Assembly (NCBI GenBank): GCA_002269645.1
Contig: NIVC01000630.1
Span: forward strand, 310,001-374,000
Source of the DNA: Macrostomum lignano
Lineage: Eukaryota
Length of the DNA: 64,000 nt
Direction of reading: 5' to 3'
Notes under the pieces: generated by a model
The model's input: only the letters and a program-made list of their open reading frames with translations
What the model was told of the DNA's origin: nothing
The model's database searches: none
Made by a program: the position numbers and the translations under genes
Shown here: positions 7,313 to 64,000 of the stretch, piece by piece
How the letters are laid out: the number at the start of each line of letters is the position of its first letter
Numbering within the stretch: the first letter of the stretch is position 1

Positions 7313-9943
7313 CTACTCTTCCTGCTTCTCAATGTAGGCACCCTTGAGGCACTTGTGCCACCTCTCAGGCAACTTCTTGATGCCGGCAGCATAGAAATCG
7401 GCAGGTGACCCCCTGACCCACTGGCTGATGGCTGATGCCAGGGTCTGTAGAGAGCTATACTGGCAACCTTAGAGGGTTTTTTCACCTCCAAACAGCCAGA
7501 AGTCACTGGGTGCGAGGTCTGGCAAGTAGGGCGGGTATGGCAGCACCTCAAAGCCCAGGTCTGAAATGGCAACCATTGTTGCCTGGCTGGTATGCGGCCT
7601 GGCATTGTCATGCTGAAGCAAGATGCCACGGCTCAGCTTGCCATGCTGCTGGGCTTTGATGGCTTCATACAACTTCTGCAGGACTTGGATATAGTACTCA
7701 CTGTTTATTGTGACACCATGAGGAAGCCATTCAATGAGCAGAATACCCTCCTTGTCCCAGAAGATGGTGGTCATTTGCTTGCCAGCTGAAGGTGCAGTCA
7801 TGGCTGGCCTTCCACACACTGCTCTGCATCTTGGACTCTGGCTCACTATAATGAAACCAGGATTCATCCCCAGTCACAATCTGGTCCAAAAAGTTGGGAT
7901 CAGTGCAATATGACTGGAGGAGCTGCTGACACACCTGGACCCACTATTGCTGCTGCTGGTCAGTCAGAAGTTTTGGGACCCAATGAGCAACCCCGTCGAA
8001 CGTTTCACCCGGAATTTTTTCCGGAATTTTGTGATCCGGGCCCGATTTTTAATTGATTTCCGGGTGAAGGCCCGGATCAGCTTTTTTGGCCCGAAACAGC
8101 CCCTTGTTCCGGAAAAAAATCCGGAAATATGATCCGGAAAATTTTCGAGAAAAGGAAAGCTGTTCCGGTCTGATTTTCCGGAATTTTTCACCCGGAACAC
8201 TATGGAATTCTGGGTGTAGACCCGAATTTCAGTAGTGTTCCGGGTGAAAATGTTCCAGGTGAGATTTCGGGAATTGAGTCGGAATTCTCCAGTGATCCGG
8301 ACCAACTGATCCGGAAAATTCACCCGGATCAGCTCCCTTGACCCAAATTTCAGCCAAGTTCCGGGCGAAGCTGATCCAGGAAAATTTCGGGACTTGAGTC
8401 GGAATTCCCTAGTGATCCGGACCAACTGATCCAGAAAATTCACCCGGATCAGCTCCCTTGACCCGAATTTCAGCCAAGTTCCGGGCGAAGCTGATCCGGG
8501 AAAATTTCGGGACTTGAGTCGGAATTCCCTAGTGATCCAGACCAACTGATCCGGAAAATTCACCCGGATCAGCTCCCTTGACCTCAAAAAAAGTTGATGG
8601 TAGCATCGAAGTCCAGCTGCCCATCCGAGTGACATTCAGAAGGTCAGCATTTTTTGTTTCTGAAAGTACGTAGAAGTGCATAGAAATATACGATTTGCAG
8701 TTGTGCACAACTGAATTCAGTATTTCTGTTTGTGGATGGCTAAATCGAGTTCGATTCAATTCGTAGTCGTGGAAAATGTATGGAACAATGACCCGTTCTT
8801 TATTTAATTTTCTGCTACTGTGATAAGCCCAAGATTTGGCTGCAAATCCGGTTCAATCATCCAGAATTCACCTGGATTCGTGTGCTAATCCGGTTCACTC
8901 TCCCGGAATTCGCCCGGATTTGTGTGCTGATCCGGTTCACTCGCCCGGATTTGTGTGCTGATCCGGTTCACTCTCCCAGAATTCGCCCAGAATTGTGTGC
9001 TGATCCAGTTTACTCGCCCGGAATTGTGTGCTGATCCGGTTCACTTGCCCGGAATTAGCCCGGATTTGTGTGCTGATCCGGTTCACTCGCCCGGAATTAG
9101 CCCGGATTTGTGTGCTGATCCGGTTCACTCTCCCGGAATTAGCCCAGATTTGTGTGCTGATCCGGTTCACTCACCCGGAATTAGCCCGGATTTGTGTGCT
9201 GATCCAGTTCACTCGCCCGGAATTAGCCCGGATTTGTATGCTGATCCGGTTCACTCGCCCGGAATTAGCCCGGATTTGTGTGCTCATCCGGTTCACTCGC
9301 CCAGAATTGTGTGTTGATCCGGTTTTCGTCGCCCGGAATTTAGCCCGGATTTGTGTGCTGATCCGTTCCACTCGCCCGGATCGTACCCGGAACAGTCACC
9401 AGATTTTTTTAGCGATCCGGGTCTATTTTCCGGAATTTTTCTTTTTGATCCGGAAATTTCGCCCGGATTCTGTAAACTTTCGTTACAGATCCGGAATTTC
9501 CACCCGGATCGGATTGCATTACTGGAATAGGAAAAAATTCCGGGTGAACGCAAAAAATTCCGGGCGAAATTCCGGGTGAAAAGTTCGACGGGACAACTCG
9601 TGACATACCGAGCTCAACCATCATGATTGAATGAATGGCCATTGATAAGATGCCAGTAATGGTTGACAACTCTCGCACTAGCTTGGCAGTCAACATCCAG
9701 AGCACAACACTCAAGCTCGATGTTCGACCTGTTGACCATGGTGGCAGGCCAGCCACTCTGTGGAAGGTCATCAACTGTCTCCCAGCCATCTTCAAAATGC
9801 TGCACCCACTTGTTGACCATTGTTTTTGATGGTGCACATTTGCCATACATTGCTTGCAACTCGCAAAGAATTTCTGCCTGTTGCTTTCCTTGTTTTCACA
9901 AAAACCAAATGACACTTCACTTTGCTTCTTCGTTTTTCAGCAT
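7313..9943 (-). pseudogene. mariner transposase pseudogene (stops, frameshifts, 1.6-kb insertion)
   Basis: ATG at 9943; HTH region (YGKCAPSKTMVNKW...DDLPQSGWP), HWVPKLLT, TGDESW, HDNARPH, YLPDLAPSDF and C-terminal GIKKLPERWHKC; stop at 7315-7313. Confidence 0.9.
7992..9592. mobile_element. Nested non-autonomous TIR element, 1601 bp, CCC termini, 2-bp TSD (probable CMC/EnSpm type)
   Basis: 25-bp TIRs CCCGTCGAAC(G/T)TTTCACCCGGAATT, 24/25 identical; AC duplicated at 7990-7991 and 9593-9594. Removing the element plus one AC restores the mariner frame GMSRVVAHWVPKLL. CCGGA-rich arms contain a 120-bp repeat (~8273-8583, ~2.5 copies) and a 42-bp array (~8860-9385). Confidence 0.9.
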
Positions 9944-11461: not shown

Positions 11462-14400
11462 ATGGCCACCACCAATGGTGGCGGAGGCGGCTTGAGCCCG
11501 ACTTCATGCAGTCAGCAGTTGGAACGTCGCAGTATTGAAGATCTTCTAGCTGGCGAAGATCTGTCCTTCATGGACGACAGTAGCAGCGATTCCTCCCGCG
11601 ATGTTGGCGAAGACGTCTTTGACGGAGCGTCAACAAATCAGCGAGATAGTTACGATGAGGCGGATGCTGCAGATGCCGCTTGGCGCTATCAGCAGATCCA
11701 GCAGCGGCAGCGGTTTGATGAGATTGTCGGGCATCGGGTGAAGCCGGACAGCTCGGTGAGAGGGTCTGGCGTCTCTGTGTGTACTTTTACTATAGGGCTG
11801 CGGTGTACTGAAGCATCACTGGTGTACTGAAGCATCAGGGGTGTACTGAAGCATCAGGGATGTAAAATGAGGCATCACTGGTGTACTGAAGGATCAGGGG
11901 TGTACTGAAGGATCAGTGGTGGGTACAAAGGGGTGTACTGAAGGATCAGGGTGGGTACAAAGTGGTGTACTGACGGATCAGGGTGGGTACAAAGGGGTGT
12001 ACTGAAGGATCAGGGTGGGTACAAAGGGGTGTACTGAAGGATCAGGGTGGGTACAAAGGGGTGTACTGAAGGATCAGGGTGGGTACAAAGGTACTGAAGG
12101 ATCAGGGTGGGTACAAAGGGGTGTACTGAAGGATCAGGGTGGGTACAAAGTGGTGTACTGAAGGATCAGGGTGGGTACAAAGTGGTGTACTGAAGGATCA
12201 GGGTGGGTACAAAGTGGTGTACTGAAGGATTAGGGTGGGTACAAAGGGGTGTACTGAAGGATCAGGGTGGGTACAAAGTGGTGTGTTCCCATTCAAAGTC
12301 AGGCAAACAATAGTACTGCGGTGCCTAGCCTTAGCTTGAATAGTGCAGCTCAACATTTACTAAAGTAAAGACGCAATTGAATTTTATTTTACCCTGCACA
12401 ATGCAATGCCAATTGCCAGCCATAGTTCTTAGTAATAATTAAATGAATATGCAAATTTTGGTCTAGTATCTCCACCTTTTATACTCTCAGCAGAATTCTA
12501 AATTAATAAAAATATATAATCACGAAAGAAATTTTTTTAATGTGGAGCCACAGTATAGTTGTCAAGTGATTTAATGCACTGCAACAAACTAATTGATCTG
12601 CCTACCCCCAACGCCTTGTTCGTGCCTCAAAGTCTGCTTAATATATTTCTGGTTTAAGAGCGTAACTGACCTTTATAAGTGCATTATTGAATTCACTATA
12701 AGCTACTGCTGAAGGATCAGGGAGGGTGTAAATGAAGTCTGAAGGATCAGGGAGGGTGTAAATGAAGTCTGAAGGATCAGGGAGGGTGTAAATGAAGTCT
12801 GAAGGATCAGGGAGGGTGTAGATTAAGTCTCTGAAGGATCAGGAAGGCTGTAAATAAACTGACTGAAGGATCAGAGAGGGTGTAGATGAACTGACTGAAG
12901 GATCAGAGAGGGTGTAGATGGAGTCACTAAAGAATCAGGGAGGGTGTAGATGGAGTCACTGAAGGATCAGAAAGGGTGTAGATGGAGTCACTGAAGGATC
13001 AGGGAGGGTGTAGATAGAGTCACTAAAGAATCAGGGTGGGTGTAGATGGAGTCACTGAAGGATCAGGGAGGGTGTAGATAGAGTCACTAAAGAATCAGGG
13101 TGGGTGTAGATGGAGTCACTGAAGGATCAGGGAGGGTGTAGATGGAGTCACTAAAGAATCAGGGTGGGTGTAGATGGAGTCACTAAAGAATCAGGGAGGG
13201 TGTAGATGAACTCACTAAAGAATCAGAGAGGGTGTAGATGAACTCACTGAAGGATCAGAGAGGGTGTAGATGGAGTAACTGAATAATCAGGGAGGGTGTA
13301 GATCAGGGGTCCCCAACCTTCTACGGGCGGCGGGCCGCATTGACAACTGGCTTAGGGTGTGCGGGCCGCATGCTAATACACAAACATAACGGCCCACCTC
13401 CTTTGCCTTGAACCATATTGATATTAGCTAGCATTCCTTCCTACTTTTCACTTCAACTCTTGACTGCGTGTACATTTGTGCGCTAGGAGTGGCTAAAATA
13501 GCAATCCAAATGAATTGAAGCGTCGCTTCTAGCAGTGGGGAGGGTAAGAGATTTCTGGGAATATTTTCAATACAGCTAGGAAAATTTTAACATTTTCGGG
13601 GGCCGCAGTGAAATCCAGTGAAATGCATGTAATGCAAACTACTGGAAGGTGCCGCGGGCCACAAAAAAGGGCTCGCGGGCCGCAGGTTGGGGACCCCTGG
13701 TAGATAGAGTCACTGACGGGTCAGGGAGGTTGTAGATGGAGTCACTAAAGAATCAGGGAGGGTGTAGATGGAGTCACTGAAGGATCAGAAAGGGTGTAGA
13801 TGGAGTCACTGAAGGATCAGAAAGGGTGTAGATGGAGTCACAGAAAGATCAGGGAGGGTGTAGATGGAGTCACTGAAGGATCAGAAAGGGTGTAGATGGA
13901 GTCACTGAAGGATCAGGGAGGGTGTAGATGGAGTCACTGAAGAATCAGGGAGGGTGTAGATGGAGTTACTTAAGAATCAGGGAGGATGTAGATAAAATCA
14001 CTAAAGAATCAGGGAGGATGTAGATAAAATCACTAAAGAATCAGGGAGGGTGTAGATGGAGTCACTGAAGGATCAGAAAGGGTGTAGATGGAGTCACTGA
14101 AGGCTCAGAGAGGGTGTAGATGGAGTCACTGAAGGCTCAGAGAGGGTGTAGATGGAGTCACTGAAGGCTCAGAGAAGGTGTAGATGGAGTCACTGAAGGC
14201 TCAATATTAGACAGGTGTTCATAAAATAATTTCAAACAAAATGAACTTCTACAAAGCAAAAATTCTGCAAAAACACCCGTCAGTTACTACTGGAGAGACT
14301 ACTATCGGACCAACCTAGCGCCGCAGTCAACGGCGGTCTGGGCACCAGCAGCAGCAACAATTTGTCACCGGTAATCCAACGCAAAGGCATTAACCCAAAT

Positions 14401-17400
14401 TGGTCATCTATAGCTCCGACACCAGACATTGAAGTCGGCGAAGTTGACGATGATGATAATATCGACGATGACCGACCGCGTAATGAGGCTTCAGTCGAAA
14501 CCGATCGCCTGCGGTTGCCGTTGCGAGACGCTGAAGGCGCCGAAGGCTCCTGTCAGGAGGACGGCGGATTGCGCAGTCCCCCAGACGGCGGCTCGGACAC
14601 CGAGTCCCTGCCCGAGAGCATCTATCATCAGCCGCCAAAGGCCGCGGATCGCGAGGCTGCCGCTCGTCTGGCGCGTCGGCTGTACCTGCTGGAAGGCTTC
14701 AAATTTACCGACGTGGCCAAGCACCTGTCTAGGAAGAACGATTTCAATACTATTGTTGGCGAGGAGTACGCAAATAATTTTGATTTCACCGGCGATACGC
14801 TTGACGCAGCGCTGCGCAAGTTTCTCAGTCGCTTCTGTCTGCTTGGGGACACCGCCGACCAGGTGAACTAGGAGTTTGAATGCTTCATCATGGCTTCTAT
14901 TTCTGATTTGTATTTTCCTTTTCATTCCGTGTTCTATCTCATTTTTATTCCGTATTCTATATCCTTTCCATTCCGTGTTCTATCCCCGTTCTAATCCGTG
15001 TTCTATCCCCTTTCTATTCCGTGTTCTATCTCCTTTCCATTCCGTGTTATATCCCCATTTTTATTCCGTGTTTTATCCCCTTTCCATTCCGTGTTCTATC
15101 CCCGTTCTAATCCGTGTTCTATCCCCGTTCTATTCCGTGTTCTATCCCCGTTCTAATCCGTGTTCTATCCCCGTTCTAATCCGTGTTCTATCCCCGTTCC
15201 ATTCCGTGTTCTATCCCCGTTCTAATCCTTGTTCTATCCCCTTTCCATTCCGTGTTCTATCCCCGTTCTAATCCGTGTTCTATCCCTGTTCTATTCCGTG
15301 TTCTATCCCCGTTCTATTCCGTGTTCTATCTCCTTTTTATTCCGTGTTCTATCTCCTTTCCATTCCGTGTTCTATCCCCTTTCTATTCCGTGTTCTATCC
15401 CCTTTCTATTCCGTGTTCTATCTCCTTTCCATTCCGTGTTCTATCTCCTTTCCATTCCGTGTTCTATCTCCTTTCCATTCTGTGTTCTATCTCCTTTCCA
15501 TTCCGTGTTCTATCCCCTTTCCATTCCGTGTTCTATCTCCTTTCCATTCCGTGTTCTATCCCCTTTCCATTCCGTGTTATATCCCCATTTTTATTCCGTT
15601 TTCTATCCCCTTTCCATTCCGTGTTCTGTCTCCTTTCCATTCCGTGTTCTATCTCCTTTCCATTCCGTTTTCTATCCCCTTTCCATTCCGTGTTCTATCC
15701 CCTTTCCATTCCGTGTTCTATCTCCTTTCCATTCCGTGTTCTATCCCCTTTCCATTCCGTGTTCTATCTCCTTTCCATTCCGTGTTCTATCCCCTTTCCA
15801 TTCCGTGTTCTATCTCCTTTACATTCCGTGTTCTATCCCCGTTCTAATCCGTGTTCTATCCCCTTTCTATTCCGTATTCTATTTCCTTTATATTCCGTGT
15901 TCTATCTCCTTTCCATTCCGTCTTCTATCTCCTTTCCATTCCGTGTTCTATCCCCGTTCTTATCCGTGTTCTATCCCCGTTCTTATCCGTGTTCTATCCC
16001 CTTTATTCCGTGTTCTATCCCCTTTCTATTCCGTGTTCTGTCTCCTTTCCATTCCGTGTTCTATCCCCATTTTTATTCCGTGTTCTATCTCCTTTCTAAT
16101 CCGTGTTCTATCCCCGTTCTAATCCGTGTTCTATCCCCTTTCTATTCCATATTCTATATCCTTTATATTCCGTGTTCTATCCCCTTTTTTATTCCGTGTT
16201 CTATCTCCTTTCCATTCCGTGTTCTATCTCCTTTCCGTTCCGTGTTCCATCCCCTTTCTATTCCGTATTCTATATCCTTTATATTCCGTGTTCCATCTCC
16301 TTTCCATTCCGTCTTCTATCTCCTTTCCATTCCGTGTTCTATCCCCGTTCTTATCCGTGTTCTATCTCCTTTCCATTCCGTGTTCTATCCCCTTTCTATT
16401 CCTTGTTCTATCCCCGTTTTATTCCGTGTTCTATCCCCTTTCTATTCCGTGTTCTGTCTCCTTTCCATTCCGTGTTCTATCCCCATTTTTATTCCGTGTT
16501 CTATCTCCTTTCTAATCCGTGTTCTATCCCCGTTCTAATCCGTGTTCTATCCCCTTTCTATTCCATATTATATATCCTTTATATTCCGTGTTCTATCCCC
16601 TTTTTTATTCCGTGTTCTATCTCCTTTCCATTCCGTGTTCTATCTCCTTTCCATTCCGTGTTCTATCTCCTTTCCGTTCCGTGTTCTATCCCCTTTCTAT
16701 TCCGTATTCTATATCCTTTATATTCCGTGTTCCATCTATCCCCGTTCTAATCCGTGTTCTATCTCCTTTCCATTCCGTGTTCTATCCCCTTTCTATTCCT
16801 TGTTCTATCCCCGTTTTATTCCGTGTTCTATCCCCTTTCTATTCCGTGTTCTTTCTCCTTTCCATTCCGTGTTCTATCCCCATTTTTATTCCGTGTTCTA
16901 TCTCCTTTCTAATCCGTGTTCTATCCCCGTTCTAATCCGTGTTCTATCCCCTTTCTATTCCATATTCTATATCCTTTATATTCCGTGTTCTATCCCCTTT
17001 CTATTCCGTGTTCTATCCCGTTTTAATCCGTGTTCTATCCTTTTTCTATTCCGTGTTCTATCCCCGTTCTATTATGTATTCCATCATACATGTTCCTCGT
17101 GCTCTATCCCATCTCTATCGTACCTGCCATTTCTTCTTGCTCCTGTAAAAAATGATGCATTCTAATCCTATCCTATTAATCCCTTGGCAACTAAAACGCA
17201 GGAGCGAGTACTGCTTCACTTTGCCAAGTCCTACCTGCGCTGCAACCCGGCCAGCTACCCGAGCGCCGACTCCTGCCACACCCTGGCCTGCGCTCTGCTA
17301 TTACTGAACAAAGACCTGCACGGCATGACCGGCCAGCGAATGACCAGTCAGCAGTTTATCGACAATCTGGCCAATCTAAACGAAGGCGACAATTATCCTA

Positions 17401-20400
17401 GGGAGGTGTTGAAATCTCTTTACCAAGCGATTAGGGCGCAACCGATTTTACAGCCGGCTAGCGGTCCTATTGTGCCGCAGCATCTGCTGATGCAGCAGCC
17501 GGCTGGCAACGGCGGCGGCGGCGTCTGCGTCTTACGACCGACGCCTCAGCACGCCGGCGGCGTCTTTAACGGCCCTTACGATTCCAGTCTATCCTCGAAT
17601 CTTCAAGACGAACAGCAGCAACAGCAACAGCAACAACAACAACAGCAAGGTCCCGGGTTCGAATTCCGTCGAGGCTATCTATCCCGAAAACAGATTCTGG
17701 ACGCCGGCGGTCGTCGAACTCGCAAAGGTCGGCGAGCTTGGCGCCGAATCTACTGCGTATTGGTCGACCTGCGCCTGCTGCTGCACAAAGACGAATCGGC
17801 GGCAGCTGCGGCAGCAACTAGCGAACAGCCAACTGCAGGTGTGCAGGACGAACTGCGAGTGCATCACTCTCTGGCTAGTCCGGCCGGCGACTACGCTAAA
17901 CGACGTCACGTGTGGCGGCTTCGACTAGCAAACGGTGCGGAATACCTGCTGCAGTGCCAATCAGCCGAGGAGCTGGACGAATGGGTGGTGGCGGTGAACC
18001 GGGCCGCGGCGTTGCTGTCGTCTCCGGCTCTGCCACCGCCGGTTGGCAGTCAGCCAGCTTCGGCCTACGCCAGGCCGCTTCTGCCCAGCGTGCCCAGCCA
18101 TTTTGGACCGGCTGAACAGCTGGAGAGGCATCAGGAACAGGTTTGCTTTAATACCCATCTCTTTACTCGTGCTGGAAGCTATCGTTATTCATTGGAAACC
18201 CTATTGGTCTTCCCTAGTGGAAGCTTTGTCTTCCATAGTGGAAACCCTATTCTTCTTCCCTAGTGGAAATACTATTCTTCTTCCCTAGTGGAAACCCTAT
18301 TCTTCTTCCCTAGTGGAAATACTATTCTTCTTCCCTAGTGGAAATACTATTCTTCTTCCCTAGTGGAAATACTATTCTTCTTCCCTAGTGAAAACCCTAT
18401 TCTTCTTCCTTAGTGGAAATACTATTCTTCTTCCCTAGTGGAAATACTATTCTTCTTCCCTAGTGGAAATACTATTCTTCTTCCCTAGTGGAAATACTAT
18501 TCTTCTTCCCTAGTGGAAACCCTATTCTTCTTCCGTAGTGGAAATACTATTCTTCTTCCCTAGTGGAAATACTATTCTTCTTCCCTAGTGGAAATACTAT
18601 TCTTCTTCCCTAGTGGAAATACTATTCTTCTTCCCTAGTGGAAATACTATTCTTCTTCCCTAGTGGAAACCCTATTCTTCTTCCTTAGTGGAAATACTAT
18701 TCTTCTTCCCTAGTGGAAATACTATTCTTCTTCCCTAGTGGAAATACTATTCTTCTTCCCTAGTAGAAATCCTATTTTTCCCTAGTGGAAACCCTGTTCT
18801 TCCCTAGTGGAAACCCTGTTCTTCCCTAGTGGAAACCCTATTCTTCTTCCTTAGTGGAAATACTATTCTTCTTCCCTAGTAGAAATCCTAATTTTTCCCT
18901 AGTGGATACCCTGTTCTACCTTGGTGGAAACCCTATTCTTCTTCCTTAGTGGAAATCATATTCTTCTTCCCTAGTAGAAATCCTATTTTCCCTAGTGGAA
19001 ACCCTGTTCTTCCCTAGTGGAAACCCTGTTCTTCCCTAGTGGAAACCCTATTCTTCTTCCTTAGTGGAAATCATATTCTTCTTCCCTAGTGGAAATACTA
19101 TTCTTCTTCCCTAGTGGAAATACTATTCTTCTTCCCTAGTAGAAATCCTATTTTTCCCTAGTGGAAACCCTGTTCTTCCCTAGTGGAAACCCTATTCTTC
19201 TTCCTTAGTGGAAATCATATTCTTCTTCCCTAGTAGAAATCCTATTTTCCCTAGTGGAAACCCTGTTCTTCCCTAGTGGAAACCCTGTTCTTCCCTAGTG
19301 GAAACCCTATTCTTCTTCCCTAGTAGAAATCATATTCTTCTTCCCTAGTAGAAATCCTATTTTCCCTAGTGGAAACCCTGTTCTTCCCTAGTCGAAACCC
19401 TATTCTTCTTCCTTAGTGGAAATCATATTCTTCTTCCCTAGTGGAAATACTATTCTTCTTCCCTAGTAGAAATCCTATTTTTCCCTAGTGGAAACCCTGT
19501 TCTTCCCTAGTGGAAACCCTGTTCTTCCCTAGTGGAAACCCTATTCTTCTTCCTTAGTGGAAATCATATTCTTCTTCCCTAGTAGAAATCCTATTTTCCC
19601 TAGTGGAAACCCTGTTCTTCCCTAGTGGAAACCCTGTTCTTCCCTAGTCGAAACCCTATTCTTCTTCCTTAGCGAAAATCATATTCTTCTTCCCTAGTGG
19701 AAACTCTATTCTTCTTCCCTAGTCGAAACCCTATTCTTCTTCCTTAGTGGAAATACTATTCTTCTTCCCTAGTGGAAACCCTGTTCTTCCCTAGTGGAAA
19801 CCCTATTCTTCTTCCTTAGTGGAAATCATATTCTTCTTCCCTAGTGGAAACCCTGTTCTTCCCTAGTGGAAACCCTATTCTTCTTCCTTAGTGGAAATCA
19901 TATTCTTCTTCCCTAGTGGAAACCCTGTTCTTCCCTAGTGGAAACCCTATTCTTCTTCCTTAGTGGAAATACTATTCTTCTTCCCTAGTGGAAATACTAT
20001 TCTTCTTCCCTAGTAGAAATCATATTCTTCTTCCCTAGTAGAAATCCTATTTTCCCTAGTGGAAACCCTGTTCTTCCCTAGTCGAAACCCTATTCTTCTT
20101 CCTTAGTGGAAATCATATTCTTCTTCCCTTGTGGAAACCCTATTCTTCTTCCCTAGTGGAAACCCTATTCTTCTTCCGTAGTGGAAATACTATTCTTCTT
20201 CCCTAGTGGAAATACTATTCTTCTTCCCTAGTGGAAATACTATTCTTCTTTCCTAGTGGAAATACTATTCTTCTTCCCTAGTGGAAATACTATTCTTCTT
20301 CCCTAGTGGAAACCCTATTCTTCTTCCTTAGTGGAAATACTATTCTTCTTCCCTAGTGGAAATACTATTCTTCTTCCCTAGTGGAAATACTATTCTTCTT

Positions 20401-22764
20401 CCCTAGTGAAAATACTATTCTTCTTCCCTAGTAGAAATCCTATTTTTCCCTAGTGGAAACCCTGTTCTTCCCTAGTGGAAATACTATTCTTCTTCCCTAG
20501 TGGAAATACTATTCTTCTTCCCTAGTGAAAATACTATTCTTCTTCCCTAGTAGAAATCCTAATTTTTCCCTAGTGGATACCCTGTTCTACCTTGGTGGAA
20601 ACCCTATTCTTCTTCCCTAGTAGAAATCCTATTTTCCCTAGTGGAAACCCTGTTCTTCCCTAGTGGAAACCCTGTTCTTCCCTAGTGGAAACCCTATTCT
20701 TCTTCCTTAGTGGAAATCATATTCTTCTTCCCTAGTGGAAATACTATTCTTCTTCCCTAGTAGAAATCCTATTTTTCCCTAGTGGAAACCCTGTTCTTCC
20801 CTAGTGGAAACCCTGTTCTTCCCTAGTGGAAACCCTATTCTTCTTCCTTAGTGGAAATCATATTCTTCTTCCCTAGTAGAAATCCTATTTTTCCCTAGTG
20901 GAAACCCTGTTCTTCCCTAGTGGAAACCCTGTTCTTCCCTAGTGGAAACCCTATTCTTCTTCCCTAGTAGAAATCATATTCTTCTTCCCTAGTAGAAATC
21001 CTATTTTCCCTAGTGGAAACCCTGTTCTTCCCTAGTCGAAACCCTATTCTTCTTCCTTAGTGAAAATCATATTCTTCTTCCCTAGTGGAAACTCTATTCT
21101 TCTTCCCTAGTCGAAACCCTATTCTTCTTCCTTAGTGGAAATACTATTCTTCTTCCCTAGTGGAAACCCTGTTCTTCCCTAGTGGAAACCCTATTCTTCT
21201 TCCTTAGTGGAAATCATATTCTTCTTCCCTAGTGGAAACCCTGTTCTTCCCTAGTGGAAACCCTATTCTTCTTCCTTAGTGGAAATCATATTCTTCTTCC
21301 CTAGTGGAAACCCTGTTCTTCCCTAGTGGAAACCCTATTCTTCTTCCTTAGTGGAAATACTATTCTTCTTCCCTAGTGGAAATACTATTCTTCTTCCCTA
21401 GTGGAAATACTATTCTTCTTCCCTAGTGAAAATACTATTCTTCTTCCCTAGTAGAAATCATATTCTTCTTCCCTAGTAGAAATCCTATTTTCCCTAGTGG
21501 AAACCCTGTTCTTCCCTAGTCGAAACCCTATTCTTCTTCCTTAGTGGAAATCATATTCTTCTTCCCTAGTGGAAACCCTATTCTTCTTCCCTAGTGGAAA
21601 CCCTATTCTTCTTCCTTAGTGGAAACCCTATTCTTCTTCCCTAGTGGAAACCCTATTCTTCTTCCCTAGTAGAAACCCTATTCTTCTTCCCTAGTGGAAA
21701 CCCTATTCTTCTTCCTTAGTGGAAACCCTATTCTTTTTCCCTAGTGGAAACCCTATTCTTCTTCCCTAGTAGAAACCCTATTCTTCTTCCCTAGTGGAAA
21801 CCCTATTCTTCTTCCTTAATAGAAACACTATTTTTCTTCCTTAGTGGAAAACATTCTTCTTTGCTTATGGAAACCATTTACTTCCTTAGTGGAAACCCTG
21901 TTATTCTTCCCTAGTGGAAACCCTGTTATTCTTCCCTAGTGGAAACCCTGTTATTAAATTAATCTTGATCTTAATCTGTTTAGTCACTTCTCCATAAATG
22001 TTTCAATACTCTTTTTTTACTCCCGACTGAACTTATCTGTTGCGCAGCTGCCAAATCCAACTCATATTTAATAGCTGGCTTCATCAAACGCCCCTCAGGT
22101 GCTGCAAATCGAGCGAGAGCTGCAATTTCTCAGCGGAGACGTCGCAGGCAGCAGCAGCCCAGCTAACAAAGACAACAACAATGTGAGCGGCTCTGCGGCG
22201 GCAGCAGCTGCATCAGGCGACAACTCCTCCAGTCCAGCGGCCACTCCTTCGCCAGCTAATTTGCGTCGTCAAAATTCCACCGGAAGTAGCGGCAGCGGCG
22301 CTTCCGGTTCCTCGTCTGGCGGCCAGTCTAGCAGTGAGCACGCGAGACACGTGTCCTTCCTGCAGAACGAAGCAATCCGGTATAAGACCTACGCCAGGCT
22401 GCTGGAGCTCATGACTGCCGCTACCCTGGATCTGCAGCAGCAGCAACAGCAGAAGCACTACCAACAGCAACTGCAGCAGTTGCAATATCAGCAACTGCAG
22501 TTGCAGCAATTGCAACAACTGCAACAGCTGCAACAGTTGCCAACTGCAACATCGGCTAAGATGCCGCAATCGACGCTATTCGAAGATTCCCCGGCAACGC
22601 CCGAGCACAGTCTGTTAGAGTCGCCAACTTTTAGTAGCGGCGGTGCGTTTCGACCTCCGACTACGACGGCGACTACGACCTCCTCCTCTTCCTCAACTCA
22701 GCAGGCTGCGTCTGACAGCCTCGGCAGTGCGCCGGCGTCTGCGGAGCTTTACGAGATTGTTTGA
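11462..22764 (+). CDS. PSD (EFA6): PSD/EFA6-family ARF6 guanine-nucleotide exchange factor (Sec7, PH, C-terminal coiled coil), ~825 aa, 4 exons
   Basis: Exons 11462-11755, 14284-14862, 17202-18140, 22099-22764, all phase 0 with GT-AG. Sec7 (LARRLYLLEGF, FDFTGDTLDAALRKFL, GDTADQ|ERVL, ALLLLNKDLH), PH (GYLSRK, WRRIYCVL, DYAKRRHVWRL, YLLQCQSAEELDEWV) and C-terminal FLQNEAIRYKTYARLL. Exon 1 and the exon 2 acceptor are less certain; further 5' exons are possible. Confidence 0.9.
11800..14203. repeat. Two related G-rich 30-32-bp minisatellites in PSD intron 1 (~11800-12283 and ~12710-14203)
   Basis: Units ACTGAAGGATCAGGGTGGGTACAAAGGGGTGT and GTCACTGAAGGATCAGGGAGGGTGTAGATGGA. Confidence 0.95.
13304..13699. 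mobile_element. hAT (Charlie/Buster-like) MITE, 396 bp
   Basis: Perfect 16-bp TIR CAGGGGTCCCCAACCT / AGGTTGGGGACCCCTG with subterminal GCGGGCCGCA motifs. Left flank GTGTAGAT; right flank GTAGAT. Confidence 0.9.
14920..17070. repeat. 23-bp pyrimidine-rich minisatellite, PSD intron 2
   Basis: Unit ~TCCGTGTTCTATCCCCTTTCTAT; source of the FRVLSPF ORFs. Confidence 0.97.
18190..21952. repeat. 25/22-bp minisatellite with block duplications, PSD intron 3
   Basis: Units TTCTTCTTCCCTAGTGGAAATACTA and CCCTGTTCTTCCCTAGTGGAAA. Confidence 0.97.
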
Positions 22765-22799
22765 CAGATTTGCTTCTTCTAGTATAGTATGGAGTCTGA

Positions 22800-24505
22800 G
22801 CGCGGGGTCCCGGGTTAGAATGCTCACTCATATTGTCTTGATTGTTGAGTCTTGATAAAGTTGCGTAAATCAAAAACAAAAGTCCCGGCTTCGAATCCTG
22901 TCCTGATAGTTAACGTCTTGATAAATTTGCTTAATTCAAAAAGTAAGGTCCCGAGTTCGAATCCTCACTCATATTGCCTTGATAGTTGAGTCTTGATAGA
23001 GTTGCTTAATTTAACAACTAAGGTCCTGAGTTCGAATCCTCACTCATATTGCCTTGATAGTTGAGTCTTGATAGAGTTGCGTAATTCAACAACTAAGGTC
23101 CCGAGTTCGAATCCTCACTCATATTGTCCTGATAGTTGAGTCTTGATAAAGTTGCGTAAATCAAAAACAAAAGTCCCGGCTTCGAATCCTGTCCTGATAG
23201 TTAACGTCTTGATAAATTTGCTTAATTCAAAAAGTAAGGTCCCGAGTTCGAATCCTCACTCATATTGCCTTGATAGTTGAGTCTTGATAGAGTTGCTTAA
23301 TTTAACAACTAAGGTCCTGAGTTCGAATCCTCACTCATATTGCCTTGATAGTTGAGTCTTGATAGAGTTGCGTAATTCAACAACTAAGGTCCCGAGTTCG
23401 AATCCTCACTCATATTGTCCTGATAGTTGAGTCTTGATAAAGTTGCGTAAATCAAAAACAAAAGTCCCGGCTTCGAATCCTGTCCTGATAGTTAACGTCT
23501 TGATAAATTTGCTTAATTCAAAAAGTAAGGTCCCGAGTTCGAATCCTCACTCATATTGCCTTGATAGTTGAGTCTTGATAGAGTTGCTTAATTTAACAAC
23601 TAAGGTCCTGAGTTCGAATCCTCACTCATATTGCCTTGATAGTTGAGTCTTGATAGAGTTGCGTAATTCAACAACTAAGGTCCCGAGTTCGAATCCTCAC
23701 TCATATTGTCCTGATAGTTGAGTCTTGATAAAGTTGCGTAAATCAAAAACAAAAGTCCCGGCTTCGAATCCTGTCCTGATAGTTAACGTCTTGATAAATT
23801 TGCTTAATTCAAAAAGTAAGGTCCCGAGTTCGAATCCTCACTCATATTGCCTTGATAGTTGAGTCTTGATAGAGTTGCTTAATTTAACAACTAAGGTCCT
23901 GAGTTCGAATCCTCACTCATATTGCCTTGATAGTTGAGTCTTGATAGAGTTGCGTAATTCAACAACTAAGGTCCCGAGTTCGAATCCTCACTCATATTGT
24001 CCTGATAGTTGAGTCTTGATAAAGTTGCGTAAATCAAAAACAAAAGTCCCGGCTTCGAATCCTGTCCTGATAGTTAACGTCTTGATAAATTTGCTTAATT
24101 CAAAAAGTAAGGTCCCGAGTTCGAATCCTCACTCATATTGCCTTGATAGTTGAGTCTTGATAGAGTTGCTTAATTTAACAACTAAGGTCCTGAGTTCGAA
24201 TCCTCACTCATATTGCCTTGATAGTTGAGTCTTGATAGAGTTGCGTAATTCAACAACTAAGGTCCCGAGTTCGAATCCTCACTCATATTGTCCTGATGGT
24301 TGAGTCTTGATGGAGTTGCGTAATTCAACAACTAAGGTCCCGAGTTCGAATCCTCACTCATATTGTCCTGATAGTTGAGTCTTGATGGAGTTGCGTAATT
24401 CAACAACTAAGGTCCCGAGTTCGAATCCTCACTCATATTGTCCTGATAGTTGAGTCTTGATAAAGTTGCGTAATTCAACAACTAAGGTCCCGAGTTTGAA
24501 TCCTG
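22800..24505 (+). repeat. tRNA-derived higher-order satellite: 291-bp HOR (66+75+75+75) x5 plus terminal monomers
   Basis: TTCGAATCC recurs at 22890, 22956, 23031, 23106, 23181 and onward; HOR starts at 22861, 23152, 23443, 23734, 24025. Monomer has an A-box-like TAGTTGAGTC..GATAGAG and B box GTTCGAATCC at tRNA spacing. Confidence 0.9.
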
Positions 24506-25439
24506 ACAAGTTGTTTAAGTCAAATCTACTGAAGTACGGGGTTCGAATTTCTGTTCCGTTCTGCTCAGCCCTGCTTGGAGTTTCGCTTCTTTGACAAGCT
24601 TTATATGTAAAATTAATCGGATCGCTTGAACTTGTTTTCTATTTTTAGCTATTTGATGACTAATTTTAATTAGTACAGACTGGATATGCACTTACTGCTG
24701 CACTATTGTTAAATAAAATCACATTTTAAGCCTTCTCCGTTTTTTTATTGTAACCTTTGTTTCTATTTCTTCGCTTTGTCTTAGTTTAATAAGTTTTTAT
24801 TAATTACTGTATGTTGAGCCCATGTCCCACTTTTGTTTCAAGTCTGATAGTAATGCGAATCTTCTACTGTTAGTAGTACGTCTATATTAGTAAACTTGGG
24901 TTTCACTGTCTAGTTAGTTTGTTAAAAAATGTTTAAATTCTATCCATTTTTTTCCTAATCACCAAATTTTTGTATAGTATCTGTTTTTAATTAAAAAGAG
25001 CACTAATTTTAACGCCCAGCGAATGCTGCTTTTCTCCACTTTGAACTTGGCGCGTTTTTTATAATTTTCTATAAAATAAGTACTATTAAAGTACAATCAT
25101 TTTTCCCCTGCGCGCAAACCTTTCTGCCCAGTGATAATGCTGCCTTTTGTTTTATGATTACTTCTGTATATTATTGCCCAACATAATTATATCATCTAGT
25201 CTGTCTAATATTGTAATCATGTTTTTATAATGTACAAAAATTCTAGCATTTTAATATTAATGGGGAAAGTTAATTGTTATAGTTTTATCGATTATCAGCG
25301 AGGCTAAAGTGCGTTTGCACTTTTAGTATTGGCCTAGCAGAATTTATGTTAGCATTTGTGAAGTTGGGCCTCGAAACCATAGCCAGTTTAAAGCTATAAA
25401 CTAGATTGGGCCATAGACAGTTTAGAGTTTTAGACTCAA

Positions 25440-26000
25440 GATTAGGTCATAGACAATTAGGAGTTATAAACTGCAGATTGTGCCATAGACAGGAGTTATA
25501 AACTGCAGATTGGGCCATGGACAATTAGGAGTTATAAACTGCAGATTGTGCCATAGACAGGAGTTATAAACTGCAGATTGTGCCATAGACAGGAGTTATA
25601 AACTGCAGATTGTGCCATAGACAGGAGTTATAAACTGCAGACTGTGCCATAGACAGGAGTTATAAGCTGCAGATTGTGCCATAGACAGGAGTTATAAACT
25701 GCAGACTGTGCCATAGACAGGAGTTATAAACTGCAGATTGTGCCATAGACAGGAGTTATAAACTGCAGATTGTGCCATAGACAGGAGTTATAAACTGCAG
25801 ATTGTGCCATAGACAGGAGTTATAAACTGCAGATTGTGCCATAGACAGGAGTTATAAACTGCAGATTGTGCCATAGACAGGAGTTATAAACTGCAGATTG
25901 TGCCATAGACAGGAGTTATAAACTGCAGATTGTGCCATAGACAGGAGTTATAAACTGCAGATTGTGCCATAGACAGGAGTTATAAACTGTAGATTAGGCC
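25440..26000. repeat. 32-bp minisatellite, intergenic
   Basis: Unit GAGTTATAAACTGCAGATTGTGCCATAGACAG, near-perfect copies. Confidence 0.97.
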
Positions 26001-51727: not shown

Positions 51728-54700
51728 TCAAAACAAATCAGCTGACCCAACGATTTCGCCGTCTCCAAAAGCGCAAGGCAGGGGCGGTAGGATCTCGTGC
51801 TGATCTATTGGAAGGTCAGTTGCCATGACAACAGTATTGCTATTGCTGCTGTTGCTGCTGCTGCTACTGCCGAAGCACTCTAAAGCATTGCCAATGTGGC
51901 AGCGACTGTGCTTCCTGAGCGAACTGGGATCTGTGTAGCGCTTCTGGCAGCCGGCAATTTCGCAGATGTACGGCTTCTGGAGACGGGTTGGGTGTTAGGG
52001 AAAAGTACATTGACCTAAATACAGATTCCTTATAAGGCTTTTTTAGATTCTTATTATGTTTATTAGGTCTTTATTAGGCTTATTATATAGGTCCTTATTG
52101 GTACTTTTAGGTCGTATTTGGTTCTTACAATAGACTTATTACGAGCTAGGTCCTTATTAAGATTGGCTTAATGTATATATAATACTAGATTAGATAATAA
52201 TATAGTTTATCAGGTCCTTGTTAGGCTTCTTTATTAGACTTACTAGGCTCTTATTAAGTTTATTTGGTCTCCGTTAGGCTTTATAGGTCCTATTAGGTCC
52301 TATTAGGTCCTTATTAGGCTTATTAGGTCTCAATTTCAATAACGCACAACTCTTAAAAGAGTGAGTTACATGTACGCTCGCACACGATTTCAAGAGTCGG
52401 TTTTCGACGTGAATTAGCTTTCTATTCGAAAAGAAGCGCTGAAATACACGTACAAGATGAGAATGTTATATTTTAACTGTTGCAACTGACAGACCTCATC
52501 ACAGTGAGTCCTCTGGTGCTTGGCCCTGTCAGACGAGTTGCTAAACGCTCTGTCGCAGGCCGGGAAACCGCAGGCGTAAGGACGCTCGCCAGTGTGGGAA
52601 CGAAAATGAATCTTCAGATTCTCCAGGCGGGAGAAAGCCTAGCGTTGATGGAGAATGGAGAGGCTGTGATCAGTTTACTGCAGAGCCTGTCGCTCTGATA
52701 CAAAAAAGCTTTACTCATTTATTAGAGGCAGGGGGCGCTGTGTGCACCCGGGCTCACTTTAAGCGACATTGTCACAGAACTGGCAAGAGGCATCACTGCC
52801 CACTCTACCGACTCCCCTGAGCAGGCACACAATTACGACGCAGTCATACGCACAGGCACTCACCTGTAGCTTAGGGGTCAGAGCGTCGCGGACTCACGAC
52901 TTGAAGGTCGGGGGTTCGATTCCCGATCCCACTGGAACAATTTGTGTCCTTGAGCAAGACACTTAACTCTGCATTTCTTCAGTTCACTCAGCTGTAAAAT
53001 GGGGTTAGCCCAGCATTAGCTGGGGTAATTGAGGCTGTGTGGGGCGACCCCTCAGTCCTTGGACTGAACAGCCGTACGCAGCTATCAGATTCGCACCGCA
53101 ATAGCAATGGGGCAGGTGTAATTATTATTATTATTATTATTACAATACACACAAAGAAGGAGTGTACAGCGTTAATTGCACGAGCAGAGCCAAGCCGAGA
53201 TTCCAGTTTAGCCCCAAAATTAATGCGACTGCACTTGGAATCGAGCCTGGGCCGCTGGCACACCAGAGCGTCATGCACTCTTGGCCACGGTACACCCTTG
53301 CACCCACCTTGCCGCACCCAGGATGAGGGCAGGTGTTCGGCCGCTCTCCGCTGTGCACTCGCATATGGATTAGCAGTTTGTATCTCGCATTGAAAGGCCT
53401 TCGCTTCCTTGCGCAGCCATTCCAGAAGCAGGTGTACTCGTCGTTCAAAGAGCGTCGGTCGATATGCAGTCGCTCAATGTGAGCCACCAGCTGACTGACC
53501 TCGGGGAATCGCTGGAATGTGCGGTCATTGTTCCAACGCTAATATCTGGTCAAATCTGGTCCTATCTTAGAGATGTCAGGAGCTCTGATTGTGGGGTGTC
53601 AGGAGCTCTGATTTTGGGGTGTCAGGAGCTCTGATTTTGGGGTGTCAGGAGCTCCGATTTTAGAGATGTCAGAAGCTCCGTTTGTGGGGCGTCAGGAGCT
53701 CCGATTGTGAAGAATCAGTAGCTCTAGGGTGTCAGAAGCTCCGATTTTGGGGTGTCAGTAGCTCTGCTTCTAGGGTGTCAGGAGCTCCGATTTTGGGGTG
53801 TCAGTAGCTCTGCTTCTAGGGTGTCAGGAGCTCCGATTTTGGGGTGTCAGTGGCTCCGATTTTAGGGTGTCAGTAGCTCCGATTGAGGGGTGTCAGGAGC
53901 TCCGATTTTAGGGTGTCAGGAGCTCCGATTGTGGGGTGTCAGGAGCTCCGATTTTAGGGTGTCAGGAGCTCCGATTGAGGGGTGTCAGGAGCTCCGATTG
54001 TGGGGTGTCAGGAGCTCCGATAGTGGGGTGTCAGGAGCTCCGATTTTAGGGTGTCAGGAGCTCCGATTGAGGGGTGTCAGGAGCTCCGATTGTGGGGTGT
54101 CAGGAGCTCCGATTTTAGGGTGTCAGGAGCTCCGATTGTGGGGTGTCAGGAGCTCCGATTGTGGGGTGTCAGGAGCTCTGATTTTAAGGGGTGTCAGGAG
54201 CTCCGATTGTGGGGTGTCAGGAGCTCCGATTGTGGGGTGTCAGGAGCTCTGATTTTAGCGGTGTCAGGAGCTCTGATTTTAAGGGGTGTCAGGAGCTCTG
54301 ATTTTAAGGGGTGTCAGGAGCTCTGACTTTAGCGGTGTCAGGAGCTCCGATTTTAGGGGTGTCAGGAACTTCGAATTTAGGGTGTCAGGAGCTTTGATTT
54401 TAGCGGTGTAAGGAGCTCCGATTGTGGGGTTTCAGACAATATAAAATCTAAATTTAACAAACCATGGAACAGCCAATCCAGCGACACTGATAAGCTGATG
54501 AGGCTGGCTCCGCCGGTCCAGCTGCAGGTCCTGCTACACTACTATCAATAGTTGCTACATCGGGTGACGCCATCTCCCACAATGACGCATGACCAGCAGC
54601 AGGAGGTGCCGGTTCGTCTAATTCGGCAAGCAGATCGGATAAAAGTTGAGTTTGCTGATGCTGCTGAGAGTTGAGCTCATCATCTGCGCTGCTCAGCTGG

Positions 54701-54924
54701 GTCAGCAAGCGGTCACAGTTAAACTGCTGCTGCTGCTGCACGTGTTCATAGTGCAGGTTTTCCACCCTCGGCGCATCCCAATCGGACATCAGTGACGTCA
54801 TCGATTGCGACTCGAAATCAAAGCCAAACTCGGCGGACATCAGGCTGGCCTGAAGCGGGTCCAGCTGGTAACTGCAGACCTGCTCCTGGGGCTGCCGACC
54901 GTCTGCGGAATCTGGCGGATCCAT
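51728..54924 (-). CDS. GLIS1/3: GLIS1/3 (lame duck-like) five-C2H2 zinc-finger transcription factor, at least 352 aa
   Basis: Exons 54924-54463, 53511-53308, 52638-52495, 51976-51728, all phase 0. Spliced product contains CRWIGCSM|[61 protein letters not shown] and [12 protein letters not shown]; [10 protein letters not shown] is diagnostic of GLIS1/3 rather than GLI or GLIS2. Upstream exons are possible. Confidence 0.93.
52020..52330. repeat. Degenerate AT-rich TTATTAGG repeat, GLIS intron 3
   Basis: Recurrent TTATTAGG(T/C)C. Confidence 0.7.
52855..53144 (+). mobile_element. tRNA-derived CORE-SINE (MIR-like core), antisense within GLIS intron 2
   Basis: A box TAGCTTAGGGG and B box GGTTCGATTCC; core TGTGTCCTTGAGCAAGACACTTAAC...CTGTAAAATGGG matches the MIR/CORE consensus as I recall it; (ATT)n tail; probable 9-bp TSD ATACGCACA (52846) / ATACACACA (53145). 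Confidence 0.85.
53572..54430. repeat. 23-bp minisatellite, GLIS intron 1
   Basis: Unit ~TGTCAGGAGCTCCGATT(TTA/GTG)GGG. Confidence 0.95.
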
Positions 54925-54959
54925 CAGTCTGACGGAGGGACGGCTACTCCAGCAGGCAA

Positions 54960-55535
54960 TTCTTCTGGCGATTCTTCTGGAGATTCAGAGGCGATTCTTC
55001 TGGAGATTCAGAGGCGATTCTTCTGGCGATTTAGAGGCGATTCTTCTGGCGATTCAGAGGCGATTCTTCTGAAGATTCTTCTTGCGATTCTTCTGGCGAT
55101 TCAGAGGCGATTCTTCTGGAGATTCAGAGGCGCTTCTTCTGGAGATTCAGAGGCGCTTCTTCTGGAGATTCAGAGGCGATTCTTCTGGAGATTCAGAGGC
55201 GATTCTTCTGGCGATTTAGAGGCGGTTCTTCTGGAGATTCAGAGGCGATTCTTCTGGCGATTCAGAGGCGATTCTTTTGGAGATTCAGAGGCGATTCTTT
55301 TGGAGATTCAGAGGCGATTCTTTTGGAGATTCAGAGGCGGTTCTTCTGGCGATTTAGAGGCGGTTCTTCTGGAGATTCAGAGGCGATTCTTCTGGCGATT
55401 CAGAGGCGATTCTTTTGGAGATTCAGAGGCGATTCTTCTGGAGATTCAGAGGCGCTTCTTCTGGAGATTCAGAGGCGATTCTTCTGGAGATTCAGAGGCG
55501 ATTCTTTTGGAGATTCAGAGGCGGTTCTTCTGGCG
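54960..55535. repeat. 23-bp minisatellite just upstream of the first GLIS coding exon
   Basis: Unit GGAGATTCAGAGGCGATTCTTCT. Confidence 0.95.
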
Positions 55536-62700: not shown

Positions 62701-64000
62701 ACATCAGCCTCTCCCATGGTCCCTTAGTTTCCAACATCAGCCTCTCCCATGGTCCCTTTGTTTCCAACATCAACCTCTCCCATGGTCCTTTAGTTTCCAA
62801 CATCAGTCTCTCCCATGGTCCCTTAGTTTCCAACATTAGCATCTCCCATGGTTCCCTAGTTTCCAACATCCGCCTCTCCCTTAGTCTTCCAGCTCAGCCA
62901 CCTTATTTACTATCAGTCCCCAAATCTGCCACTCGATTGTCTTTTATTCCTTTTATTCCCTGTAGTCCTAATTATTGCGCAATGTTTTAAAGTCGAATGC
63001 ATTTTATTAGACAGCTATTAGCTACGCTCTTTCATATTTAGAAGCTAAAAACTCACTCTGTCCTCAGCCCTAGCCTGTTGCAAGGCCTCCTGCAGCTGCA
63101 AATCCGACAGCGCCCTGGCCCTATTAAGCGAATCATCGCCTACGGCTACTGTTGTCTCAGTCTGAGCAGCCAGCGGTCTACGCCCCAGTTTGCACGACTC
63201 TCGGCTCATGCCAACAGCCAGGCACTTGCGCAATCGACAGGCTTTACAATCCGACCGATTATTCGGCGTCACGTCGCACTGATTGCCGCCGCGTACGCAG
63301 ACTAGACGCGTCGGAGGCGACAACGAGCCGCCGACGTCCGACACAGACGATTGCTGATTATTAGCCAGAGCTCGTTTGAAAAAATTCCGACAACTTTCGC
63401 AGGCGTGCACGCCGTAGTGCAAATTAACTCGACGATTAGTGCCGCACACCGAGCAGCAAACAGTTGAAGAATTTGTCGCCGAAGAATTCGACGCTGTCGG
63501 AGTCCAAGTAGACGATGTCGGCGATAAGGATGAAGCTGTGGAAGCGGCTGCAACCGACAACAGTTGGCCAACGATGGCATCTTCGTCATCAACATCTTCA
63601 TTGTCATCGTCAAGAACCTCATCGTCGACAATAACATCGTCGTCCATCTGGCCGCCAATGCTGATCGAAGTCGCTGCTGCTGATGTCGGCGATACGACCA
63701 CTGTGGTTGTTGGCGAAGTAGCCGACGGTCTAGCGAGTCGCACGGTGACAGTCCGCCTAGGATTCGATGGCAGGCTTTTAACAACGGCGCCGTTCTTGGC
63801 CGTTGTGGACGACGAAGCGTTGGTTAGCAGAACGTCCTGGCTGTTGTTTTCAACAACTGACCGACGACTGCGGCTGCCACCACTGCGCTGCTGCCTAGCA
63901 ACTCCAAGCACATCGGCAAGAACGTCGTCTTCATGATCATCATCTTTGACGCTATTATCGTCGGTAGAATTATGATTGCCGACAATGATTTCGGCTGGCA
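59744..64000 (-). CDS. Divergent nuclear hormone receptor (C4 DBD and LBD), 5'-partial, >878 aa
   Basis: Exons >64000-63057, 61684-60313, 60066-59744 (phases 0 and 1 consistent). DBD CSVC...HYGVHACESCRNFFKR...CVRGGNQCDVTPNNRSDCKACRLRKCLAVGM; LBD signature DFAIKFGEFQSLSTADRCQIVL; frame open to the window edge. Confidence 0.92.
61750..62880. repeat. 33-bp minisatellite, nuclear receptor intron
   Basis: Unit TTAGTTTCCAACATCAGCCTCTCCCATGGTCCC. Confidence 0.97.

Follow-up and report, generated by a model that had tools for sequence, protein, structure and literature searches.

Genes flanking the array

The 64-kb window analysed here, which is the whole stretch of Macrostomum lignano DNA under study (contig NIVC01000630.1, positions 310,001 to 374,000 of the forward strand), contains a tandem array of 66- and 75-bp units, most of which carry a B box such as is found in tRNA genes. 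The array lies between two genes, both on the + strand. The upstream gene contains Sec7 and PH_9 domains, identified with Pfam in its upstream exons, and is PSD/EFA6-like (PSD in the following). A protein search with its exon 17184-18140 returns the M. lignano entry A0A1I8HUK0 of UniRef, and this protein matches exons 11462-11758, 14308-14862 and 17190-17519 with 98-100% identity. The last coding exon is probably the open reading frame (ORF) 22075-22761, followed by a TGA stop codon at 22762-22764 (+ strand); this ORF is assigned to the PSD-like gene by its strand, its position and a weak C-terminal resemblance, seen by eye, to the homologue from Enterobius. BLASTP of the ORF against the Enterobius homologue gives no significant match (best E 0.62). 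The same exon contains a CAG/CAA stretch coding for polyglutamine (22454-22548), which is self-complementary and attracts spurious sub-threshold Rfam matches to microRNA and small-RNA families on both strands. The downstream gene is BRSK, of which a kinase fragment and a KA1_BRSK domain are recognised at 44.6-48.3 kb; its nearest recognised exons lie 20 kb downstream of the array.

The PSD stop codon and the array are 41 bp apart, slightly more than the ~35 bp given in an earlier account made from the letters alone (the sequence-only reading). The 40 bp between stop codon and array show no significant similarity to the repeat unit or to tRNAs, and the motif TAGTATAGT in this leader, reminiscent of the A box of tRNA-Asp/Gly, was rejected for the same lack of significance. 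A motif scan finds neither AATAAA nor ATTAAA between the stop codon and position 24712. The first run of four T residues on the + strand occurs at 24635 and the first AATAAA after the stop codon at 24712-24717, and the region 24635-24717 is likely to contain the 3′ end of the mRNA. Since no AATAAA or ATTAAA precedes 24712, the whole array probably belongs, in sense orientation, to the 3′ untranslated region (UTR) of the PSD mRNA. Within the array the + strand is free of TTTT, as had been noticed before. The − strand of 22824-24503 contains ten T5 runs, two per higher-order repeat (HOR, see below), which would halt any antisense transcription by RNA polymerase III (Pol III).

Architecture of the array

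Tandem Repeats Finder (TRF) delimits the array at 22806-24504, with a period of 291 bp present in 5.8 copies (97% matches) and with sub-periods of 75 bp. When the sequence is cut after each GAATCC, it falls into 23 monomers, arranged as five 291-bp HORs and three further 75-bp units. This is the arrangement described in the sequence-only reading, to which a partial unit in front and a decayed tail behind can now be added. The HORs span 22824-24278 on the + strand and each consist of four monomer types in the order A-B-C-D, with lengths of 75, 66, 75 and 75 bp. In the first HOR these types occupy 22824-22898, 22899-22964, 22965-23039 and 23040-23114, respectively. Type A carries CTTCGAATCC at the position of the B box, while type B lacks the block TCACTCATAT and has one extra base. 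The three terminal monomers E1-E3 (24279-24503, + strand, 75 bp each) resemble type D, and E3 carries GTTTGAATCC. A near-duplication of 14 bp, CTTGATAG...CTTGATAG, is present within the monomer.

At its upstream edge the array begins with the partial unit GGTCCCGGGTTAGAATGC (22806-22823, + strand), which is similar to a T arm with B box and matches the 3′ end of the monomer at 14 of 16 positions. This partial unit has kept the canonical GGG, which has changed to GAG in the inner copies. At the downstream edge about 1.3 old monomers, including GGGGTTCGAATTT, form a decayed tail from 24504 to ~24600 (+ strand). The tail is still recognisable as monomer sequence: its local alignment score of 20.0, compared with 9.8 ± 2.3 under the null, is reached by 2 of 1000 shuffles.

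The HORs are much more alike than the monomers from which they are built. HOR copies 2-5 (23115-24278, 1164 bp) are identical base for base, and copy 1 differs from them at only two positions, so that identity between HORs is 99.3-100%, against 84-96% between monomer types, a higher-order periodicity like that of classical satellite DNA. Such near-identical units in head-to-tail order are as expected for a tandem repeat derived from a tRNA or from the tRNA-like head of a short interspersed nuclear element (SINE). In contrast, the tens of kb, many loci and heterochromatic position of a classical satellite are not seen in the window, the array being 1.7 kb long and situated between two genes. 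A blastn-short search reveals no second copy of the HOR in the rest of the window, and patterns of 22 and 26 nucleotides taken from the monomer have no match in two metagenome scans.

Relationship of the monomer to tRNAs and SINE heads

Four lines of evidence connect the monomer with tRNAs. The first is the 19-mer AGGTCCCGAGTTCGAATCC, for which a search of 596 Gb of prokaryotic genomes yields 19 exact matches. Of these, eleven lie inside tRNA-Thr or tRNA-Pro genes called by ARAGORN, always covering the variable loop and T arm, and at least three more resemble the 3′ part of a tRNA by eye. In real genomes the 19-mer is almost confined to this part of tRNAs. The form common in those tRNAs is CCCGGGTTCGAATCC, of which the 19-mer is a rare variant (G52A). 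The more canonical form GGGTT..GAAT, with GGGTT, persists in the oldest copies at the edges of the array.

Secondly, the whole monomer aligns to a set of 41 metazoan tRNAs with a score of 17, compared with 10.5 ± 1.4 for shuffled sequences, none of which (0/500) reaches it. Most of this signal stems from the 3′ third of the monomer. The 5′ part was considered separately in an anchored comparison, a global alignment of the first 45 nt of the monomer with tRNA positions 1-43 in the register set by the B box. The score of type C is reached by none of 1000 shuffles, that of E by 6/1000 and that of D by 9/1000. tRNA-Lys-UUU is the best anchored match for four of the five monomer types, which agrees with the likeness of the 5′ end to tRNA-Lys(TTT) noted in the sequence-only reading. 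When the metazoan set is replaced by real bacterial tRNA-Thr, 3 of 1000 shuffles reach the score of type C.

The third line of evidence is provided by a SINE elsewhere in the window, of which the tRNA-like head lies at 52863-52935. Monomer E aligns globally to 52863-52940 with a score of 3.0 (null −18.5 ± 4.2; 0/2000 shuffles), and the aligned stretch begins in the A-box region and reaches the B box. The SINE is only distantly similar to the monomer. The possibility that the rest of the unit is SINE body, as in the snake repeat sSat3, was rejected (local score 7.0; null 7.6).

Finally, the array stands out when every 75-nt window of the 64 kb is compared with the tRNA set: its + strand scores 10.0, whereas its − strand gives −0.5, so that the signal is confined to the + strand. 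Only two other loci among 123,950 background windows on both strands reach a score of at least 9.5, and both look tRNA-derived. These are the SINE head itself (+ strand) and a degenerate stretch on the − strand at 53030-53104, which resembles tRNA-Asn.

In all, the unit is significantly similar to a tRNA or SINE head in a single orientation and in register, with an identity that is modest and with types A and B contributing weakly. As the 19-mer, the anchored 5′ alignment, the SINE-head similarity and the rank within the window are partly independent and agree in register and strand, it is highly probable that the unit descends from a tRNA or a SINE head.

The monomers are not tRNA genes

Despite this similarity, the monomers do not constitute tRNA genes, and a tRNA-like fold is not expected of them. 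The sequence-only reading spoke of tRNA-like genes, a description for which cloverleaf, covariance match and folding signal are all lacking; its further statement that they are not functional tRNAs is borne out. ARAGORN calls no tRNA gene with either its default or its metazoan-mitochondrial settings, and at a threshold of 60% produces inconsistent and implausible calls only. Rfam searches of the whole window at gathering score reveal no tRNA, SINE or ribozyme family, and neither do searches at E≤10 of 22000-25500 (3.5 kb) and 24200-24560 (361 nt), in which the tRNA model RF00005 is likewise without a match; the sole matches are the spurious microRNA ones on the CAG/CAA stretch. None of the minimum-free-energy folds of the monomers is a cloverleaf, and their stabilities are no better than those of dinucleotide shuffles (z +0.26 to +0.83). 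The acceptor stem is unpaired, 47.5% of the cells in the T-stem model are paired, and an acceptor/T-arm minihelix of the mascRNA type is not formed. A terminator of four or more T residues, as expected for a tRNA gene, is also absent from the + strand between 22806 and 24634.

The sequence-only reading had let a tRNA or SINE origin depend on a covariance match to the monomers. The Rfam tRNA search is indeed negative, but it is too insensitive to decide the matter: the clear tRNA-derived SINE head at 52863-52935 likewise yields no Rfam tRNA at E≤10 and no ARAGORN call. Since this head is missed too, the failure of the covariance model does not speak against descent from a tRNA.

B box, A box and hairpin

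The exact sequence GTTCGAATC occurs 17 times in the array and nowhere else in the window, which confirms the earlier count of perfect B boxes; five copies of CTTCGAATC and one of GTTTGAATC are variants of it. Expressed as B boxes (consensus GGTTCGANTCC), 17 of the 23 units have AGTTCGAATCC, five have CTTCGAATCC and one has GTTTGAATCC. The form AGTTCGAATCC fits the consensus at 10 of 11 positions, and position 52 is variable in tRNAs. The 17 boxes trace back to founder types B, C and D, amplified fivefold, and to two of the three terminal monomers. Being copies of three founder types that were amplified very recently, they do not represent independent cases of conservation, contrary to the weight first given to them. 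Among the eight distinct monomers, 2 of 10 columns are variable within the B box and 16 of 66 elsewhere (Fisher p=1.0), and the non-tRNA blocks TCACTCATAT and GTCTTGAT are as invariant as the B box. The B box is thus no less variable than the rest of the unit, which removes the argument from conservation for a function in binding TFIIIC; TFIIIC may nevertheless bind, the motif being a good B box.

An A-box-like sequence, TAGTTGAGTC, is located 46 bp upstream of the B box, within the expected 30-60 bp, but lacks G18 and G19. The 4-bp stem with paired variants described in the sequence-only reading survives in part. The variants exist, comprising one compensatory change in type B and one G-U pair in type C, but type A breaks the stem, and the covariation is equalled by 190 of 500 shuffles and so is not significant. 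Moreover, the register of the stem is ambiguous, as a register slid by three columns pairs at 90.6%. Models with a 4-bp hairpin, a 5-bp hairpin and a T arm were all rejected for want of significant covariation.

Tandem repeats in the window

The window is rich in tandem repeats, with 46 arrays making up 41.5% of its length. Of these, 35 are at least 150 bp long and are typically 0.5-0.7 kb. For comparison, simple and tandem repeats account for 15% of the published M. lignano assembly (PMC5730564). The arrays of the window have units of 12-120 bp that differ from one array to the next, and higher-order periods of 80, 120, 188 and 236 bp are found in other arrays as well. The spacers between arrays are unrelated to each other, and a common dispersed element carrying the arrays was rejected on the ground that the spacers share no similarity. 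None of the remaining 45 arrays contains the B-box motif. Local tandem amplification is so pervasive that the presence of an array at the PSD site needs no special or functional explanation; only its unit is unusual.

Origin of the array and alternative explanations

The array is best explained as a young, locally amplified repeat of four-monomer HORs, of tRNA-related descent, situated most likely in the 3′ UTR of the PSD/EFA6-like gene and without function; we consider this reading likely as a whole. Of the proposals made in the sequence-only reading, a tRNA- or SINE-head-derived unit with a canonical B box is the one that is best supported. The 75-bp unit would have started as a tRNA pseudogene or as a SINE head of tRNA origin. 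In this view about 64 bp of it are collinear with tRNA positions ~1-62, with the 11 bp of TCACTCATATT taking the place of the 3′ strand of the T stem and of the acceptor. Duplication of the ancestral unit and divergence of the duplicates may have given rise to types A-D, after which unequal exchange or replication slippage would have multiplied the 291-bp ABCD block very recently. Growth presumably took place by the same process that filled 41% of the window with unrelated arrays, and the B boxes would be intact simply because the copies are young.

A number of observations weigh against this reading. The A box TAGTTGAGTCT matches only 6 of the 9 specified positions of TRGCNNAGTGG, which 44% of shuffles also achieve (p=0.44). 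In a free local alignment the 5′ half of the monomer is not significantly similar to the 5′ halves of tRNAs (p=0.14-0.57), and the anchored signal is weak or absent in types A and B. Identity is low to any tRNA, with 45 of 76 columns for tRNA-Lys-UUU, and does not allow an isotype to be assigned. Within the metazoan tRNA set, Lys-UUU alone was checked letter for letter (PMC11096365). With perhaps 10^5 arrays in the genome, a few units bearing a B box by chance are to be expected. The perfect identity of HOR copies 2-5 could be due in part to polishing of the assembly. Lastly, neutrality is an absence of evidence, since only about seven distinct monomers from one locus provide little power to detect selection.

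Several of these points, together with the negative covariance tests, favour a chance resemblance, in which an arbitrary unit, one among the very many tandem-repeat families of the genome and unrelated by descent to tRNAs or SINEs, happens to contain a B-box-like decamer. The A box does not rise above chance, and the 5′ half lacks significance in free local alignment. For the whole monomer a Gumbel estimate gives a per-array p of ~1e-3, which has to be set against the possible ~10^5 arrays (15% of 764 Mb), and the 14-bp near-duplication CTTGATAG could mimic the symmetry of a D arm. However, a coincidence would have to account for several partly independent tRNA signals that agree in register and strand, and for the more canonical GGGTT..GAAT in the oldest edge copies. 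We therefore regard chance resemblance as unlikely.

Another explanation is that the array is a functional landing site for TFIIIC, in which 22-23 B boxes at intervals of 66-75 bp would recruit TFIIIC without productive Pol III transcription, in the manner of ETC or chromosome-organizing-clamp (COC) sites, and would act as a chromatin boundary between PSD and BRSK or as an architectural element. The 17 units with the near-consensus AGTTCGAATCC, which is absent from the rest of the window, are consistent with such a role, as are the poor A box, which is a property of TFIIIC-only sites, and the position between two genes on the same strand. Clusters of B boxes are reportedly established as boundaries in Schizosaccharomyces pombe. 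On the other hand, the B box is under no more constraint than the rest of the unit, the identity of the copies results from recent amplification, and 45 other arrays have formed in the window without any B-box motif. In addition, 20 kb separate the array from the nearest BRSK exons that can be recognised. A functional array of this kind is improbable. By analogy, about 22 B boxes bound by TFIIIC might serve as a boundary, as an anchor in three-dimensional organisation or as a roadblock or termination aid for RNA polymerase II, with a strength tunable through copy number; this elaboration is, if anything, even less probable.

If each monomer were a type-2 promoter, the array might consist of one or more Pol III units, giving read-through multimers that end at the T run at 24635. 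The intact B box, the A-box-like TAGTTGAGTC within working spacing and the contrast between a T4-free + strand and ten T5 runs on the − strand would fit this arrangement, and some tRNA-related tandem repeats, such as PolIII/TAN of the newt, are transcribed in vitro (PMC10702118). Yet the A box does not exceed chance and lacks G18 and G19, transcripts of up to 1.8 kb without terminators would be atypical, promoters packed so densely would interfere with each other, and the RNA has no structural signal. Pol III transcription of the array is very improbable.

Cleavage of tRNA-like elements in the PSD 3′ UTR by RNase P and RNase Z, as in mascRNA or tRNA punctuation and as contemplated in the sequence-only reading, is extremely improbable: although the array is sense-oriented and probably within the PSD transcript, with no poly(A) signal before 24712, and although M. 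lignano possesses multi-gene transcriptional units with trans-splicing (PMC5730564), the acceptor stem is unpaired, the T stem pairs in less than half of the cells, the folds are neither cloverleaves nor more stable than shuffles, and covariance model and ARAGORN are negative.

The neutral, locally amplified repeat of tRNA-related descent would, if true, be another case of a tRNA or SINE-head sequence seeding a tandem repeat, and the first we have found described in a free-living flatworm; no description of SINEs or satellites from Macrostomum was found in the literature. Its use would lie mainly in the annotation of repeats in the repeat-rich M. lignano genome and in the reading of 3′ UTR models. 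A practical lesson is that a negative result with a tRNA covariance model or with ARAGORN does not exclude tRNA ancestry. The array would gain in importance only if its B boxes were occupied by TFIIIC; it would then offer a natural test, variable in copy number, of B-box arrays as insulators, in an animal for which transgenesis is available. A true TFIIIC boundary would be a metazoan counterpart of the B-box boundary elements of S. pombe, born from a tRNA-like repeat.

Other features of the window

The SINE used for comparison extends from ~52856 to 53135 on the + strand and is MIR-like (CORE-type), consisting of the tRNA-like head at 52863-52935, a core and an (ATT)n tail. The head contains the A box TAGCTTAGGGG and the B box GGTTCGATTCC, and the MIR-like core TGTGTCCTTGAGCAAGACACTTAAC...CTGTAAAATGGGG is comparable with a MIR core oligonucleotide (PMC6344866). 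The SINE lies among the exons, likely within an intron, of a C2H2 zinc-finger gene on the − strand (51731-54984; zf-C2H2_15, Gli/Zic-like exons). The tRNA-Asn-like stretch at 53030-53104 is situated on the opposite strand inside the 3′ region of the SINE and has a global score of 15.5 against tRNA-Asn-GTT; it may be due to chance or may be a second tRNA-derived fragment.

Many of the tandem arrays occupy introns of the PSD-like gene (14920-17073 and 18193-21949) or are interspersed with exons of BRSK (25-47 kb). In the pairs 43321-43881/44900-45433, 12709-13303/13700-14203 and 31155-31800/35006-36413, the two arrays have in common either their unit, of 40 or 32 bp, or the core CCCTACCCTCCGA. 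The pair with the 40-bp unit flanks the BRSK exon for the kinase domain at ~44.7 kb. The − strand further contains the remnant of a non-LTR retrotransposon (3-2869) with endonuclease, RVT_1 and RNase H, a fragment of a mariner-type transposase (7472-7873; Transposase_1/DDE_3) and a nuclear hormone receptor gene (60149-63998) with zf-C4 and ligand-binding domains.

Comparison with known tRNA-related repeats

Within the window, the array resembles ordinary M. lignano minisatellites in its context and its likely mechanism of growth. Unlike the other arrays, it shows a clean HOR of four monomers, identical copies and a probable tRNA-related ancestry. Its basic unit is the longest in the 64 kb, with the exception of a 120-bp array at 8219-8588.

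Close-set consensus B boxes, poor or absent A boxes and a position between genes are shared with the IR/COC sites of S. pombe and the ETC sites of yeast and mammals. For these sites, however, the defining evidence is TFIIIC occupancy and boundary activity as measured, and they do not consist of HORs of tRNA-length units, whereas in the present array the similarity is one of motif only.

A closer parallel is provided by the SINE-derived satellites (sSat) of squamates, the best documented tandem repeats with tRNA-related segments, which are arranged head to tail and include the promoter box B, with a unit of 67 nt in snake sSat3 (PMC10702118). They comprise few to tens of monomers, show di- or trimeric alternation of types and reach identities of up to 100% in longer loci (PMC10702118). 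The M. lignano array has the same combination of short units (66/75 nt, against 67 nt there), a tRNA-related head with box B and alternating types. It differs from sSat3 in that the parent SINE of the latter is identified and its unit comprises the 3′ part of the head together with SINE body, whereas the unit described here, from the one locus examined, aligns to the part of a SINE head between A-box region and B box, inclusive, but not to the SINE body.

A tRNA-like segment without a confirmed SINE parent is also found in the amphibian repeats PolIII/TAN (newt), OAX/satellite 1 (Xenopus), Rana/polIII and Hy/polIII (PMC10702118, PMC6947457). The identity to tRNA is modest in these repeats, as it is here; Rana/polIII, for example, has 64% identity over 64 nt (PMC10702118, PMC6947457). 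The amphibian repeats are highly abundant and have units of 200-750 bp, of which the tRNA-like part is only a fraction, whereas nearly the whole 75-bp unit of M. lignano is tRNA-like and the array is confined to 1.7 kb in the 3′ region of a gene. Tandem repeats with tRNA-related segments are thus an established kind, and the array behind the PSD gene fits among them as a further member.

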